This document shows positions 1 through 34,675 of a stretch of 34,675 nucleotides of DNA, one piece after another. The DNA is taken from positions 1-34,675 of the forward strand of contig MU626460.1 in the NCBI GenBank assembly GCA_025603075.1. Direction: 5' to 3'. Origin of the DNA: Neoconidiobolus thromboides FSU 785 (Eukaryota > Fungi > Entomophthoromycota). Position 1 is the stretch's first letter, and each line of letters begins with the position of its first letter. A program made the position numbers and the translations under genes. The notes under the pieces are model-generated. The model ran no database searches. It saw only the letters and a list, made by a program, of their open reading frames with translations, and had not been told where the DNA came from.

Positions 1-160
1 TAGAAAAGGCAAAGGCTACCAAGATTACAGATTATTTTAAAGTTGTAGGTAAGAGTGTCAGTGACTCAAAAGGTGAAATAAAGCCTAAAGTTAAACCTCA
101 AAGACTTGAAAATGAGTTGAAAAAGTCGAAAAAAGCAATCTATTTGAACAAAAAGGATAA
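1..160 (+). repeat. Left arm of window-bounding inverted repeat; open frame from nt 3 (EKAKATKITDYFKVVGKSVSDSKGEIKPKVKPQRLENELKKSKK...), probably the 3' end of a gene entering from outside
   Basis: nt 1-95 are the exact reverse complement of 34581-34675. nt 1-118 match at 115/118 (mismatches at 96, 108, 115). Weaker homology with two 9-nt indels continues to a TAA at 158-160 that aligns with the right-arm stop. Confidence 0.95.
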
Positions 161-428
161 TTTTTATTATTTTCAAAATATAAATAAAGTAATTTATTAA
201 AATTTAAAAAGCTATAAAAATGCTGTTTCTATTATTAGAAACTAAAACTATACAATATTAAGATAAAGCTACATCTTAAGCCTATTATTGTACAATTTCT
301 AATATTTATTGAAGATCAAACCACTTGCTATTGATAAACTTGAAAATTAATTTATTTAGATTAATAAATTCAAAGAAATTTGACTTAAAATAGATATAAT
401 TTTTATTAAAAAAATCTATTTACAGTTA

Positions 429-499
429 TGCGTACACTGGGAATCGAACCCAGGCCACTTCTTTGGAAGAGAAGTATTCTACCTCTATACTATGTACGC
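429..499 (-). tRNA. tRNA-Gly(TCC), intronless
   Basis: GCGTACA/TGTACGC acceptor stem, CTTCT/AGAAG anticodon stem around a CTTCCAA loop, GGTTCGATTCCC T-arm, and a T-run about 14 nt downstream. Confidence 0.96.
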
Positions 500-1110
500 T
501 TGGCTTGTTGCATACTATTGGAAAAAAAAGGTATATAAATTTTAGTTATATCTAAAATCTTATGACATAAATTTATACACAAAGTGCCTAAAAATAAAAA
601 TGATACTAAAGTTAAATAATCAACAATTATAAAACTTGTCTATTTATTAAGTTAATGATAATTTGATTATATTGCAATTAATAAATAGAATAAAGAGGTT
701 CAGGATTTATAAGAATAATGATTTAGTTAATACATCTTTGTAGCTTAATTTAAGGGTTTGAAATTCCAATTAAGTTACTTTAAATTCAATCTTTTAAAAT
801 CATTAATAACTTTATTTATTCATACTTTTATTAGTAAATAAATCTTATTTCAAATAGTCTTTACTCAATAGCATAAAAATTAATTTAGTGTTAAAAATGT
901 TATAATAGATACTATTATTTTACTATTATTAATATTATCTCCCGCAAATAATAAAAAAGCGATATAGTTGTTTAATTCCGATCATTCTAGCATTCATTGG
1001 TTAATTTAAAACTCAAACCTTAAGCTTCAAACTATACTTGAATTGATATTCAGAACAAAATTATTAATAATTTATTTATTTATTTTTATTTAAAAAAGTG
1101 TCAATTTTCA

Positions 1111-2964
1111 ATGACTTTAACTCCAGCCAAAAAACTAACCCATCGTTGTGATTCATGCCATTTTCGTAGTAAAAAATGTGATCGTAAGCTACCTATTTGT
1201 ACTCAATGTTCTTTAGAAGGCTATAAATGTACTTTACAAAGAGGGGTTAAAAATAATAAGAGGTTGTTTGAGATTGAAGATAAAATTAGTTGCTTTAAAT
1301 TAAAAGGTAGGAAATCAAGTCTCAATATCAATGGAAGTTATAATAGGGATAATAGTAATAACTGTAGGAATGGAAATAGTAGTAAAACAAGTAGTGAAGA
1401 TGAAGGTCAATATATTATTAAGCATCATGTACTGGATAATAAGATTGATAAGATTTATTATAAGCTGTTTGATAATGAAATAAAGCTAATGATGGAATTT
1501 TCTAATAAAAATTTATTAGAGAACATCTTATTATTCTTACAATACCCCATGTTAAATGCTTCAAATCCCGGATTTCGATTTTTAATGACAACGTTGATCA
1601 CAGTTCGAAATTTACAAAGTAAAAATCCATTGAAGTTTAATAGCTTAAAAAAAGAAGGAGATCAAAAAGAAATTAGAGAGATTATTGAATTAGCTATTAA
1701 GCAATTTTTTAAAAACGAATATTTACTGGGATCCATGTTTATCACTAAGAACTTTGATATTAACAAGCTAAACACTTACACAAAGATTGCGATTATTACG
1801 TGTGGATTAAAGCATTTACCAAGGACAGAAACAGTAATTAATTTATTAAATTATTTTGAAGAAAAGTTATATAAATTTATCCAACCTCTATCTCAATTAA
1901 AAGTAACATTTGATAACTTAAGGACAATATCCATTATCTTATTTGGTTTAAGGAACTTTCAATGGGTAATTAAATGTAATAATCGATTATTATATTATTT
2001 ATCAATCAATGTTCGATTATTGGGATTAAATAAGAATATACGAGATAAAAATAATCGAGAACGGTATTTGTTTTTTAATGCATTAGTATTTAATATGAGT
2101 TATTTGTATACCCTTATTTCTTTTCCTTATCATTATATTCCCAGTTATGAATATACATTTAATTATAAAAAACAAATTAATTATTATTTAAAAGAATATC
2201 CAATAATAATTCAAAAGAATGAAATTAATCAAATAATTATAATCTATTATCATATATTTAATTATTATATAGGTAGTTTAGCATTAACAATAATTCAATT
2301 AAATCAAATTAAAAATCAAATTAGCCATTATTTAACTAATTTTAACGAGCAATTAAATAATATAAATAATATATTAATAAATTTGAAATATAATAATTCC
2401 TATTATATTTCAATTATTAATGAATTAATAGAAAGTAATAATAACTATTGTCAATATAATAATAATAAGAAAAACTCAATTGTTAAAGAATATACAACAT
2501 TATTAATGAATTTTAAAACTCATATTTTGTTATTTCATCATTATTATCATTTTTTTATATTGTCTTTTAAATTATATCATAGTAACGATATCCTCAATCT
2601 TGCTCTACCCACAACGGATATTGATATATTATTACCTATTTTACTCGTACCTGAAGATTATTTAGACAGCTATCTCTCTATATTAATTTATAAATCAATG
2701 ACAGTAATTGAATTAGTTAAATCTACCCCATTAACTCAATGTAATCATATGCATATTGCTGTGTTATCTCAATGCTCTATTTTTTTAATAAGAAATCAAT
2801 ATGATAAAAAATTTAATACTAAAATTCAACAAAGTTTAAAGAGTAGTTTAAATATATTAAATATATTAAATCAAACTCCATATAATGTACCTCATGCTGG
2901 TATTAATCTTTTTTTATTAAATTGTGCACTAGAAGAAAATAGTCAAAACCAATTGACCAATTAA
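1111..2964 (+). CDS. Zn(II)2Cys6 binuclear-cluster transcription factor, intronless, Asn-rich
   Basis: 617-aa ORF with N-terminal CDSCHFRSKKCDRKLPICTQCSLEGYKC, matching C-x2-C-x6-C-x6-C-x2-C-x6-C. Confidence 0.9.
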   Translation: MTLTPAKKLTHRCDSCHFRSKKCDRKLPICTQCSLEGYKCTLQRGVKNNKRLFEIEDKISCFKLKGRKSSLNINGSYNRDNSNNCRNGNSSKTSSEDEGQYIIKHHVLDNKIDKIYYKLFDNEIKLMMEFSNKNLLENILLFLQYPMLNASNPGFRFLMTTLITVRNLQSKNPLKFNSLKKEGDQKEIREIIELAIKQFFKNEYLLGSMFITKNFDINKLNTYTKIAIITCGLKHLPRTETVINLLNYFEEKLYKFIQPLSQLKVTFDNLRTISIILFGLRNFQWVIKCNNRLLYYLSINVRLLGLNKNIRDKNNRERYLFFNALVFNMSYLYTLISFPYHYIPSYEYTFNYKKQINYYLKEYPIIIQKNEINQIIIIYYHIFNYYIGSLALTIIQLNQIKNQISHYLTNFNEQLNNINNILINLKYNNSYYISIINELIESNNNYCQYNNNKKNSIVKEYTTLLMNFKTHILLFHHYYHFFILSFKLYHSNDILNLALPTTDIDILLPILLVPEDYLDSYLSILIYKSMTVIELVKSTPLTQCNHMHIAVLSQCSIFLIRNQYDKKFNTKIQQSLKSSLNILNILNQTPYNVPHAGINLFLLNCALEENSQNQLTN

Positions 2965-32954: not shown

Positions 32955-33240
32955 ATCCTTTTTTAAAATATCCTGGAATATCGTAACTTTGATTAAATTT
33001 ATTAATGACCCATTATAAAAATAGTATTAATGATATTATTTCTATACTCTAACTGTTTATTAATGTTTTCAATCATCATTTAGATATATATTGGTATAAT
33101 GCAGTTCAAAATATTCAGCATTTTAGACACTAAATTTAACTTGTTATAACTTAAAAGAAGCACAAATAATAGTTTAATATATAAGAGATATATAATAAAA
33201 ACGAATAAAAAGTACAATTAAATTTAGAACAAATTATAAT

Positions 33241-34321
33241 TCACTTTGGATAGTTAAACAATTTAGGTAAATATCGTTGATCAATAAGTGGCCAAACCTT
33301 ATCAGTATCGAAAAGCTCAATAAACTGTTGATCTAAAGCACGCGCTTTAGGGAGAGCAAATCTTCGATACTCATCAAATATTGAAGTTAAAGACCATCCT
33401 TGTAGTTTACGTAAGCAGCCTACTAAACAGCCCGTACGATGCTAACTAATTTTAACAGTTGATTATTTAAATAAACTTAATATTACTTTTCCTTTATTAC
33501 AGTGAATCAAGATTGGGTGATTTCTCCTATCTAAACTAATAACTAATTATTCATAAATACTATCTTCTTAACTCACCTAACAATACTTTTAATGCCCCAC
33601 GAATCATGTCTTCAGGTATATCAACAAATGGTTCCTAAAAATATTAATAGCTATAGACTATTAGTTATAAAAATTACTTTATTTCCAGCAACCCCAAATT
33701 GATAAAGGGTTATATTTTGCTCATCTAAAAATTTACAATTTTGTTCAGGGTAATCTTCCAATATCAAAGTACTAAAAAAATAAATAAGCCCTTACAATAT
33801 TATTAAAAATAGACTTACAGGATACTTCTTAGTTTCAATCGTTTAATAAACTCAAAATTTTTCTTTCTTGGAAAACCAGAGCGATAAATATGGGGCGTAA
33901 CTAGCTGAAAGTTTTCACTTGGAATTAAATATTCTTGGTATTCTTCGATTATAGCTTCTGGTAAATCTAGCAACGGTAAATTGGGTTTGATTTTATTATT
34001 TTTTTCATTTTCAGTACTCGATAATGGTTTTAAGTGAGGATTGTTAGTCGGGTTCTTTTTAGTGATAGTTCTATGATTATTGTAATCCAAATGTGACATA
34101 AATATTTCTATTGGAAATGCTGGTGATGCATCATCTTCATTTATTTCTGATTCCAAATTTAGCTTATTGGTGACATACTCAGTATCTATTGTATAATACC
34201 TCTCTAATTTTAGTTCTTTGGCTCCTTTTCTTTGTTTTACTTCTTTCATTTCCTTTATTATTTCGGGCTCTTTTATTTCACATATATCCTTTTTTTGTTC
34301 ATTATTGTCATTGTTTTCCAT
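33241..34321 (-). CDS. SIW14: Siw14/Oca-family inositol pyrophosphate (atypical dual-specificity) phosphatase, multi-exon
   Basis: [36 protein letters not shown]|[18 protein letters not shown]|[16 protein letters not shown] and [23 protein letters not shown]; stop TGA 33243-33241. Confidence 0.93.
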
Positions 34322-34514
34322 TTTATTTATAAGAATGTTTATTACATTAAATTATTACCAGTTTTTCATAGATACGAAATCAGAGTAATAGCTTAACTCA
34401 TTCCAATTTTTGCAATTAATTTTAATTTAAAAAATTATGCTAATAAATATTCATATGAGGGAACACTTATATTATTAAAATAACTAATTTAAAAACAAGA
34501 TTTATTTAATGAGA

Positions 34515-34675
34515 TTATTCATTTTTATTTAAACGTTTCGACTCTTTAAGCTTCTCTAACGCATTTTTAAGTCTTTGAGATTTAACTTTAGGCTTTATTT
34601 CACCTTTTGAGTCACTGACACTCTTACCTACAACTTTAAAATAATCTGTAATCTTGGTAGCCTTTGCCTTTTCTA
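34515..34675 (-). repeat. Right arm of window-bounding inverted repeat; reads ...KATKITDYFKVVGKSVSDSKGEIKPKVKSQRLKNALEKLKESKRLNKNE*
   Basis: Reverse complement of nt 1-160 (see left arm); stop TAA at 34517-34515. Confidence 0.95.

Follow-up and report, generated by a model that had tools for sequence, protein, structure and literature searches.

The window analysed here, a stretch of 34,675 nt, is an entire contig of the assembly (C203; G000:C203:1-34675), and it consists of a spacer bounded at each end by the 3' end of a gene assigned to the RAD2/XPG nucleases (Table 1). The spacer contains genes for tRNA-Gly, a Zn2Cys6 factor, a SET/MYND protein, a CHL1-type helicase, a Sec23/24-like protein, CDC50 and CIA30, together with tRNA-Phe, two ORFs without a Pfam match, a zinc ADH, an NAD kinase and an OYE reductase, and also MVD1, a SNAPC1-like protein and a SIW14-like phosphatase. 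The housekeeping genes and the two tRNAs that the original prediction had placed inside the block were confirmed, and so was its description of an interior free of transposase, recombinase and reverse transcriptase: among the 17 spacer ORFs of at least 100 aa, no transposase, recombinase, integrase or reverse transcriptase domain was found. A search of the assembly for a second copy of the spacer returned only MITEs and distant paralogues, and neither an allelic twin of C203 nor a contig with an alternative junction was found there.

Table 1. Positions of the features in the 34,675-nt window
Feature	Position	Strand	Basis or remark
Exact 95-mer	1..95	+	Common to the other contig end (inverted) and to the end of C750; inside the last RAD2 exon
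Left RAD2/XPG copy, 3' end of last exon	1..200	+	Frame continues from C750
Left-arm transition zone	96..169	+	Pairs with 34507-34580; identity falls from 87% (96-118) to 57% (119-169)
Single-copy spacer between the RAD2 copies	201..34514	.	ORF domain scans and assembly-wide copy search
Right-arm transition zone	34507..34580	-	Pairs with 96-169
Right RAD2/XPG copy, 3' end of last exon	34515..34675	-	Stop at 34517-34515

The inverted ends of the window

Direct comparison of the window ends bore out the inverted repeat as first described, with bases 1-95 forming the exact reverse complement of 34581-34675, 115 of 118 bases identical overall, the first mismatch at base 96, and both ends starting with TA. 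Identity declines inward from this point, with 20 of 23 positions matching at 96-118. In a repeat search of the window the arms reach 169 nt, with 85% identity; the ungapped identity at 119-169 is that given in Table 1, as compared with 35% expected from composition (P ~0.001), and from ~221 the similarity is down to background. The inverted match between the two ends is far beyond chance. It does run to the first and last base, as had been noted, but because the window is a whole contig these are contig ends and not the termini of a biological element. When window positions 1-170 were used as a query against the assembly, matches were found only at both ends of C203 and at positions 1162-1256 of a third contig, C750. 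A high-copy dispersed repeat whose copies merely happen to flank the block, named in the original prediction as a competing account, is ruled out by this distribution.

The RAD2/XPG gene and its outer flanks

The original prediction had proposed a search for continuation of the repeat beyond the window, and such continuation is found in C750 (1256 nt), which reads in frame into window base 1 and extends the arm homology outward by at least 1161 nt. The last exon of the gene begins at C750:1155, 7 nt upstream of window base 1, the preceding intron ending at C750:1154. In the left copy the codons begin at window positions divisible by 3, and the encoded tail (...KATKITDYFK...KVIY) ends at a TAA at 198-200. 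The right tail equals that of the left copy as far as ...KPKVK and then differs (SQRLKNALEKLKESKRLNKNE). C750 contains an XPG_I domain (99 bits), and its best solved relative is yeast Rad2 (159 bits, E 5.7e-46), with lower scores for human XPG (105-110 bits), FEN1 (~75), GEN1 (68) and EXO1 (34). Judged by these similarity scores, the gene in the arms is a RAD2/XPG (ERCC5) nuclease, with a catalytic region nearer to Rad2/XPG than to FEN1, EXO1 or GEN1.

In the other two XPG loci of the genome the N and I regions lie at most 0.5 kb apart. C750 starts with a lysine-rich open frame of 110 aa upstream of XPG-I, and the N region is on a separate contig, C404, where profile positions 1-54 only of XPG_N are matched at 245-90 (minus strand), the match being cut off by the start of the contig. 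This stretch has an in-frame TAA at 176-174, and a clean in-frame splice onward is absent from it, with a frame problem past the first intron. The searches with RAD2 took its exons one at a time.

A second contig, C12, shares this 5' region. Its bases 1-95 equal C404:192-286 exactly, with a mismatch at base 96, past which the homology continues at ~97-98% up to ~C404:667 and fades by ~700. In all, C404 and C12 have ~500 nt in common at 92-99%, followed by unrelated genes, the homology beyond being limited to MITE copies; the outer edges of the arms are diffuse, at ~C404:690 and ~C12:528. Pfam matches identify an acyl-CoA oxidase and a kinase on C404 (9.5 kb), and a WD40 protein and GAL7 within the initial 10 kb of C12. 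The sequence between C404:1 and C750:1 is absent from the assembly, and the remainder of the XPG-N region falls within this gap. Taken together, C404:1-690, the whole of C750 and window positions 96-169 give a length of at least about 2 kb for each arm. An Rfam scan for an RNA gene in the GC-richer stretch upstream of RAD2, run on the window, C750, C751, C404 and the initial 10 kb of C12, returned only the two tRNAs.

The 95-nt overlap and the proposed collapse of the arms

An exact overlap of 95 nt is found not only between the two ends of C203 but also between C203 and C750, between C12 and C404, and at C751, an arbitrarily chosen contig with a self-inverted end of exactly this length. By contrast, two further small contigs searched against the genome, C749 and C752, have dispersed repeats at their ends and lack an exact overlap of this length, and the rule therefore applies at some contig ends but not at all; its recurrence was judged on 13 whole contigs and the C12/C404 case. 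ALLPATHS-LG builds unipaths at K=96 by default (PMC5905499). A literature search on the assembly method of this genome returned nothing useful, and K=96 was deduced from the data. As read from the contig ends, the length of 95 nt is an assembler constant, namely K-1 for K=96. The smallest contig in the assembly has 1001 nt, which indicates that shorter graph pieces were filtered out. The pattern resembles that of a collapsed repeat in a de Bruijn or unipath assembly, in which a contig breaks off at a branch node of the graph, exactly 95 nt (K-1) short of the point where the copies first differ: the 95-mer also ends a third contig (C750), which would be the collapsed copy, and the same length returns at unrelated contig ends. 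It is unlike such a case in that the overlap is missing at some contig ends here.

Very probably, then, C203 represents the unique sequence enclosed by an inverted RAD2/XPG duplication, and the contig ends were set by a K=96 assembler that collapsed the arms. Two distinct 3' tails at the window ends and two distinct 5' flanks on C404 and C12 point to two convergent gene copies bracketing the block. These nearly identical genes, encoding a nucleotide-excision-repair nuclease, would read into the block from both sides, and a de Bruijn or unipath assembler with K=96 would fail to separate them where they are identical. Their common part would have been collapsed into C750 and into pieces under the 1-kb cut-off, and C203 would have stopped on each side precisely K-1 bases short of the position at which the copies begin to differ, so that the perfect 95-nt 'terminal inverted repeat' would be an outcome of the collapse and not a biological terminus. 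The physical order would be C404/C12, an unassembled gap, C750 and C203, and each arm would take in the whole gene, starting ~450 nt ahead of the ATG and ending near the stop codon. Gene conversion probably keeps the arms alike, as suggested by the gradual decay of identity at both edges together with the collapsed interior. This arrangement resembles inverted segmental duplications with gene conversion, such as palindrome arms and plastid inverted repeats, in having convergent near-identical copies around a unique spacer, and a highly identical core with divergence rising gradually at both edges. It differs from them in that the arms are only a few kb long and contain one nuclear repair gene, and in that their homogenisation is deduced from the assembly collapse.

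Alternative readings and the orientation of the spacer

Other explanations of the inverted ends were weighed against this duplication. Among the options first offered for the block were a giant TIR element and a composite unit bounded by two inverted copies of an outside element. A large non-autonomous TIR transposon or a composite transposon with host cargo is extremely improbable: all that speaks for it is the perfect inverted repeat terminating the window on each side, but the outer end of this repeat is a contig end in mid-exon, the homology goes on in C750, the arms code for a RAD2 nuclease and not a transposase, single-copy housekeeping genes fill the interior, and the recurrence of exactly 95 nt at unrelated contigs speaks for an effect of the assembler. 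The giant TIR element is contradicted by a repeat that lacks termini of its own, by the lack of a transposase, and by the occurrence of the end sequence elsewhere only in the collapsed C750. The composite unit survives in part, since two inverted copies that continue outward do bound the block; these copies, however, are the host RAD2/XPG gene and not an insertion sequence or transposon, and the precise 95-nt limits mark where the assembly broke off within an exon. The locus is similar to Tn10-like composite transposons and giant TIR elements in outline only, as a block between inverted repeats, and differs from them in that its arms consist of a host repair gene and encode no transposase, and the repeat is without defined termini, apparent target-site duplication or further copies. 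An assembly artefact, also foreseen in the original prediction, accounts for the exact boundaries, but the two copies differ at both gene ends. In its pure form, with a single RAD2 gene bracketing C203 through a fold-back chimera or mis-join in the assembly or library, this reading gains from the assembler effect behind the 95-nt bounds and is nevertheless very improbable: past base 95 each end has an open coding tail and a stop codon of its own, the two tails being homologous but not the same, the two 5' flanking contigs share ~500 nt at 92-99% before passing into unrelated genes, and a chimera would not yield diverged paralogous sequence at both gene ends. It is very improbable that the genome is non-haploid and that the two versions represent alleles or a heterozygous inversion, in place of two loci on one chromosome. 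The identity of C404 and C12 (97-99% over ~480 nt) would fit such a state, but their homology ends after ~500 nt, MITE copies aside, the window ends have nothing in common beyond ~170 nt, no second allelic contig for C203 was found in the assembly, and an inverted RAD2 3' end would stand at each end of C203 under every haplotype scenario.

Mechanically, the third option first offered, inversion by homologous recombination between the arms, would be possible, and a genuine flip-flop, in which recombination between the RAD2 arms inverts the 34.3-kb spacer so that both orientations coexist in the population or culture, as with plastid inverted repeats, would be compatible with the inverted duplication. 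Such a flip-flop is doubtful. Arms of at least about 2 kb that are nearly identical (C750 being collapsed, and the outer 380 nt 2-3% different) speak for it, and the gradual identity decay at both edges suggests continuing exchange between the arms; on the other side, there is no evidence of a second orientation, to which a collapsed assembly is blind, and gene conversion without crossover gives an identical pattern. Mating-type switching in methylotrophic yeasts uses inverted-repeat flip-flop regions. The present locus resembles these in its kilobase-scale inverted repeats, between which lies a block of tens of kb that homologous recombination could turn round; it is unlike them in that no mating-type genes and no silencing landmarks such as a centromere or telomere were seen, and in that the host is not a budding yeast. 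The genes beside the arms inside the block are tRNA-Gly and the Zn2Cys6 factor on one side and the SIW14-like phosphatase on the other. ORFs near the arms (inside C203, in the 9.5 kb of C404 and in the first 10 kb of C12) were scanned at a size of at least 100-110 aa per exon and yielded neither a recombinase nor any mating-type gene, HMG and homeodomain genes included. It is unlikely that the full set of features applies, namely a RAD2/XPG palindrome in an early-diverging fungus whose arms are held near-identical by ongoing gene conversion while the 34-kb spacer flips by crossover, giving an inversion polymorphism, and whose arms contain the organism's only RAD2-type genes, one or both of them possibly damaged at the 5' end.

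The biology underlying the inverted RAD2/XPG duplication around 34 kb of housekeeping genes would be ordinary. The case mainly offers a caution for the reading of contigs, in that a perfect inverted repeat at both contig ends, of a length that recurs at other ends, indicates a collapsed repeat in the assembly graph and not a mobile element. The block may also be a site of recurrent inversion. For the finishing of this genome, a matter of modest interest, C404, C12, C750 and C203 can probably be joined.

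RAD2 sequence at the ends of the window

The original prediction of a 95-nt perfect inverted repeat is borne out: the two ends of the window are exact reverse complements, far beyond chance. The match first breaks at base 96, and 20 of the 23 bases that follow the repeat match; over positions 119-169 ungapped identity is 57%, where composition predicts 35% (P about 0.001), and background is reached from about position 221. As sequence, the repeat does extend to the first and last base, but not as the terminus of an element; the window is a complete contig (C203), so its outermost bases mark only the stopping point of the assembler. 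The TA with which both ends begin belongs to a leucine codon and the codon after it. A search with positions 1-170 across the window's own assembly (799 contigs, 24.6 Mb) returned C203 at its two ends and, as a third and last location, the end of a 1256-nt contig, C750.

The reading frame continues from C750 into window base 1. C750 encodes an XPG_I domain (99 bits); among solved relatives, the catalytic core of yeast Rad2 scores highest (159 bits, E 5.7e-46), followed by human XPG (105-110 bits), FEN1 (about 75), GEN1 (68) and EXO1 (34); its four short introns have intact GT...AG borders. From the exon and repeat coordinates, the ‘TIR’ starts 7 nt inside the last exon. The two RAD2 tails at the window ends are identical through ...KPKVK, thereafter different yet related-looking, and the left one contains KITDYF, which resembles the PCNA-binding motif found at the C terminus of nucleases in this family. 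Exons were searched separately. The only XPG-family loci elsewhere in the genome, on contigs C228 and C104, have N and I regions close together and would correspond to FEN1 and EXO1 types. The gene spread over C404/C12, C750 and C203 is the RAD2 orthologue, and its 3' two-thirds look intact in sequence.

The RAD2 start was found on contig C404, and contig C12 begins within the same first exon. These contigs are about 97-98% identical across roughly 480 nt, including some 420 nt of upstream sequence, beyond which identity drops to 56%, reaching background by about C404:700, where they become unrelated. In the first exon of C404 an in-frame stop interrupts the conserved N region, and beyond the first intron no splice on C404 regains the conserved sequence in frame; at least one copy appears to have a damaged 5' end. 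The upstream regions, otherwise 98-99% identical, also differ by an indel of 22 nt, which lies in sequence of higher GC content and without an Rfam match.

Coordinates of features in the window (C203) and in other contigs of the assembly
Feature	Contig	Position	Strand	Remark
Terminal inverted repeat	C203	1-95; 34581-34675		exact
Unique spacer	C203	201-34514		
Left RAD2 stop	C203	198-200		end of last exon
Right RAD2 stop	C203	34517-34515	minus	second version of last exon
Last RAD2 intron end	C750	1154		
Last RAD2 exon start	C750	1155		
Shared 95-mer start	C750	1162		last 95 nt, common to both C203 ends
RAD2 start	C404	245-90	minus	XPG_N positions 1-54; runs off contig start
In-frame TAA	C404	176-174	minus	
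Match to first 95 nt of C12	C404	192-286		exact
22-nt indel	C404; C12	542-569; about 351-400		
Outer genes	C404			acyl-CoA oxidase, kinase
Outer genes	C12			WD40, GAL7
ORFs without Pfam match	C203	16299-16847; 17225-18070; 31570-31881		
Tandem paralogous ORFs	C203	16325-16624; 17548-17847		74% identical over 300 nt
MITE-like family	C203	13848-16013; 25827-26440; 29280-29683		
MITE-like family	C12	565-694		
‘Hairpin’ contig	C751	1-1252		unique middle 1062 nt
Dispersed unit	C749	320-785		about 460 nt, 82-84% identity
Dispersed unit	C752	1100-1252		about 150 nt, 95-97% identity

The 95-nt length

Ten small contigs were sampled without prior knowledge. In one, C751 (1252 nt), the two ends are again exact inverted copies over precisely 95 nt and unrelated from base 96 on, and the exact match between C12 and C404 likewise gives way to mismatch at base 96. 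Because three unrelated exact contig-end matches share this length, 95 is identified as an assembler constant, namely K-1, with a K of 96 deduced from the data. ALLPATHS-LG by default builds unipaths at K=96 (PMC5905499). The signature is found at simple branch points between two copies and is not universal: the small contigs C749 and C752 terminate in high-copy dispersed repeats and lack such an overlap.

C751 is a second ‘hairpin’ contig in which no ORF reaches 50 aa; it probably separates the arms of another small inverted repeat that the assembly collapsed. C749 and C752 consist largely of high-copy dispersed repeats, including units found in dozens of contigs.

Structure and origin of the locus

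Both the 5' flanks and the 3' tails exist in two distinct versions, and the middle in a single collapsed one. The structure that accounts for this most simply is flank, forward RAD2, 34.3-kb unique spacer, reverse RAD2, flank, with the physical joins C404/C12-C750-C203 inferred. Each arm would start about 450 nt before the ATG and end near the stop codon; it would measure at least about 2 kb, to which a gap must be added. This gap (C404:1 to C750:1), absent from the assembly, presumably went into contigs of less than 1 kb; the smallest contig has 1001 nt, so shorter pieces were discarded. The collapsed assembly is compatible with either pairing of flanks with ends and with either orientation of the spacer.

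A Pfam run covered the 17 C203 ORFs that are at least 100 aa long; matches included a Zn2Cys6 factor, SET/MYND protein, CHL1-type helicase, Sec23/24-like protein, CDC50, CIA30, zinc ADH, NAD kinase, OYE, MVD1, SNAPC1-like protein and SIW14-like phosphatase. The core genes named in the original prediction (CHL1-type helicase, MVD1, CDC50, NAD kinase, SIW14-like phosphatase) and two tRNAs are in place, and no transposase, integrase or reverse transcriptase was found among these ORFs. Three ORFs had no Pfam match, among them a tandem paralogous pair.

Of the earlier readings, a giant TIR element is contradicted by the mid-exon start of the repeat, the outward continuation in C750 and the lack of a transposase among these ORFs, and a composite transposon of the Tn10/IS10 type by bracketing copies that are the host gene RAD2 and not a transposase. 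Inversion of the spacer, mediated by the RAD2 arms, is possible. Second copies of C203 sequence are limited to a MITE family and distant paralogues; C203, being single-copy, is not a haplotig, and an alternative junction of C203 is absent from the contigs of the assembly.

The bracket is an ordinary inverted host-gene duplication, its perfect terminal repeat an artefact of assembly collapse. The exact 95 nt are an assembly effect on top of a real duplication; the identity profile suggests that this duplication is older and that gene conversion has homogenised its core. Outwards from the collapsed core, identity at the 5' edge falls to 97-98%, about 90%, about 56% and background, and at the 3' edge from 100% to 87%, 57% and background. 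Were the 2-3% divergence seen in the outer zone to hold everywhere, a run of 1256 identical nt would be very improbable (P below 1e-13), assuming no smoothing of differences by the assembler.

The MITE-like family (about 100-120 nt) has thousands of candidates genome-wide at first look, with close inverted pairs frequent, and on C12 one copy lies directly at the RAD2 arm's outer edge.
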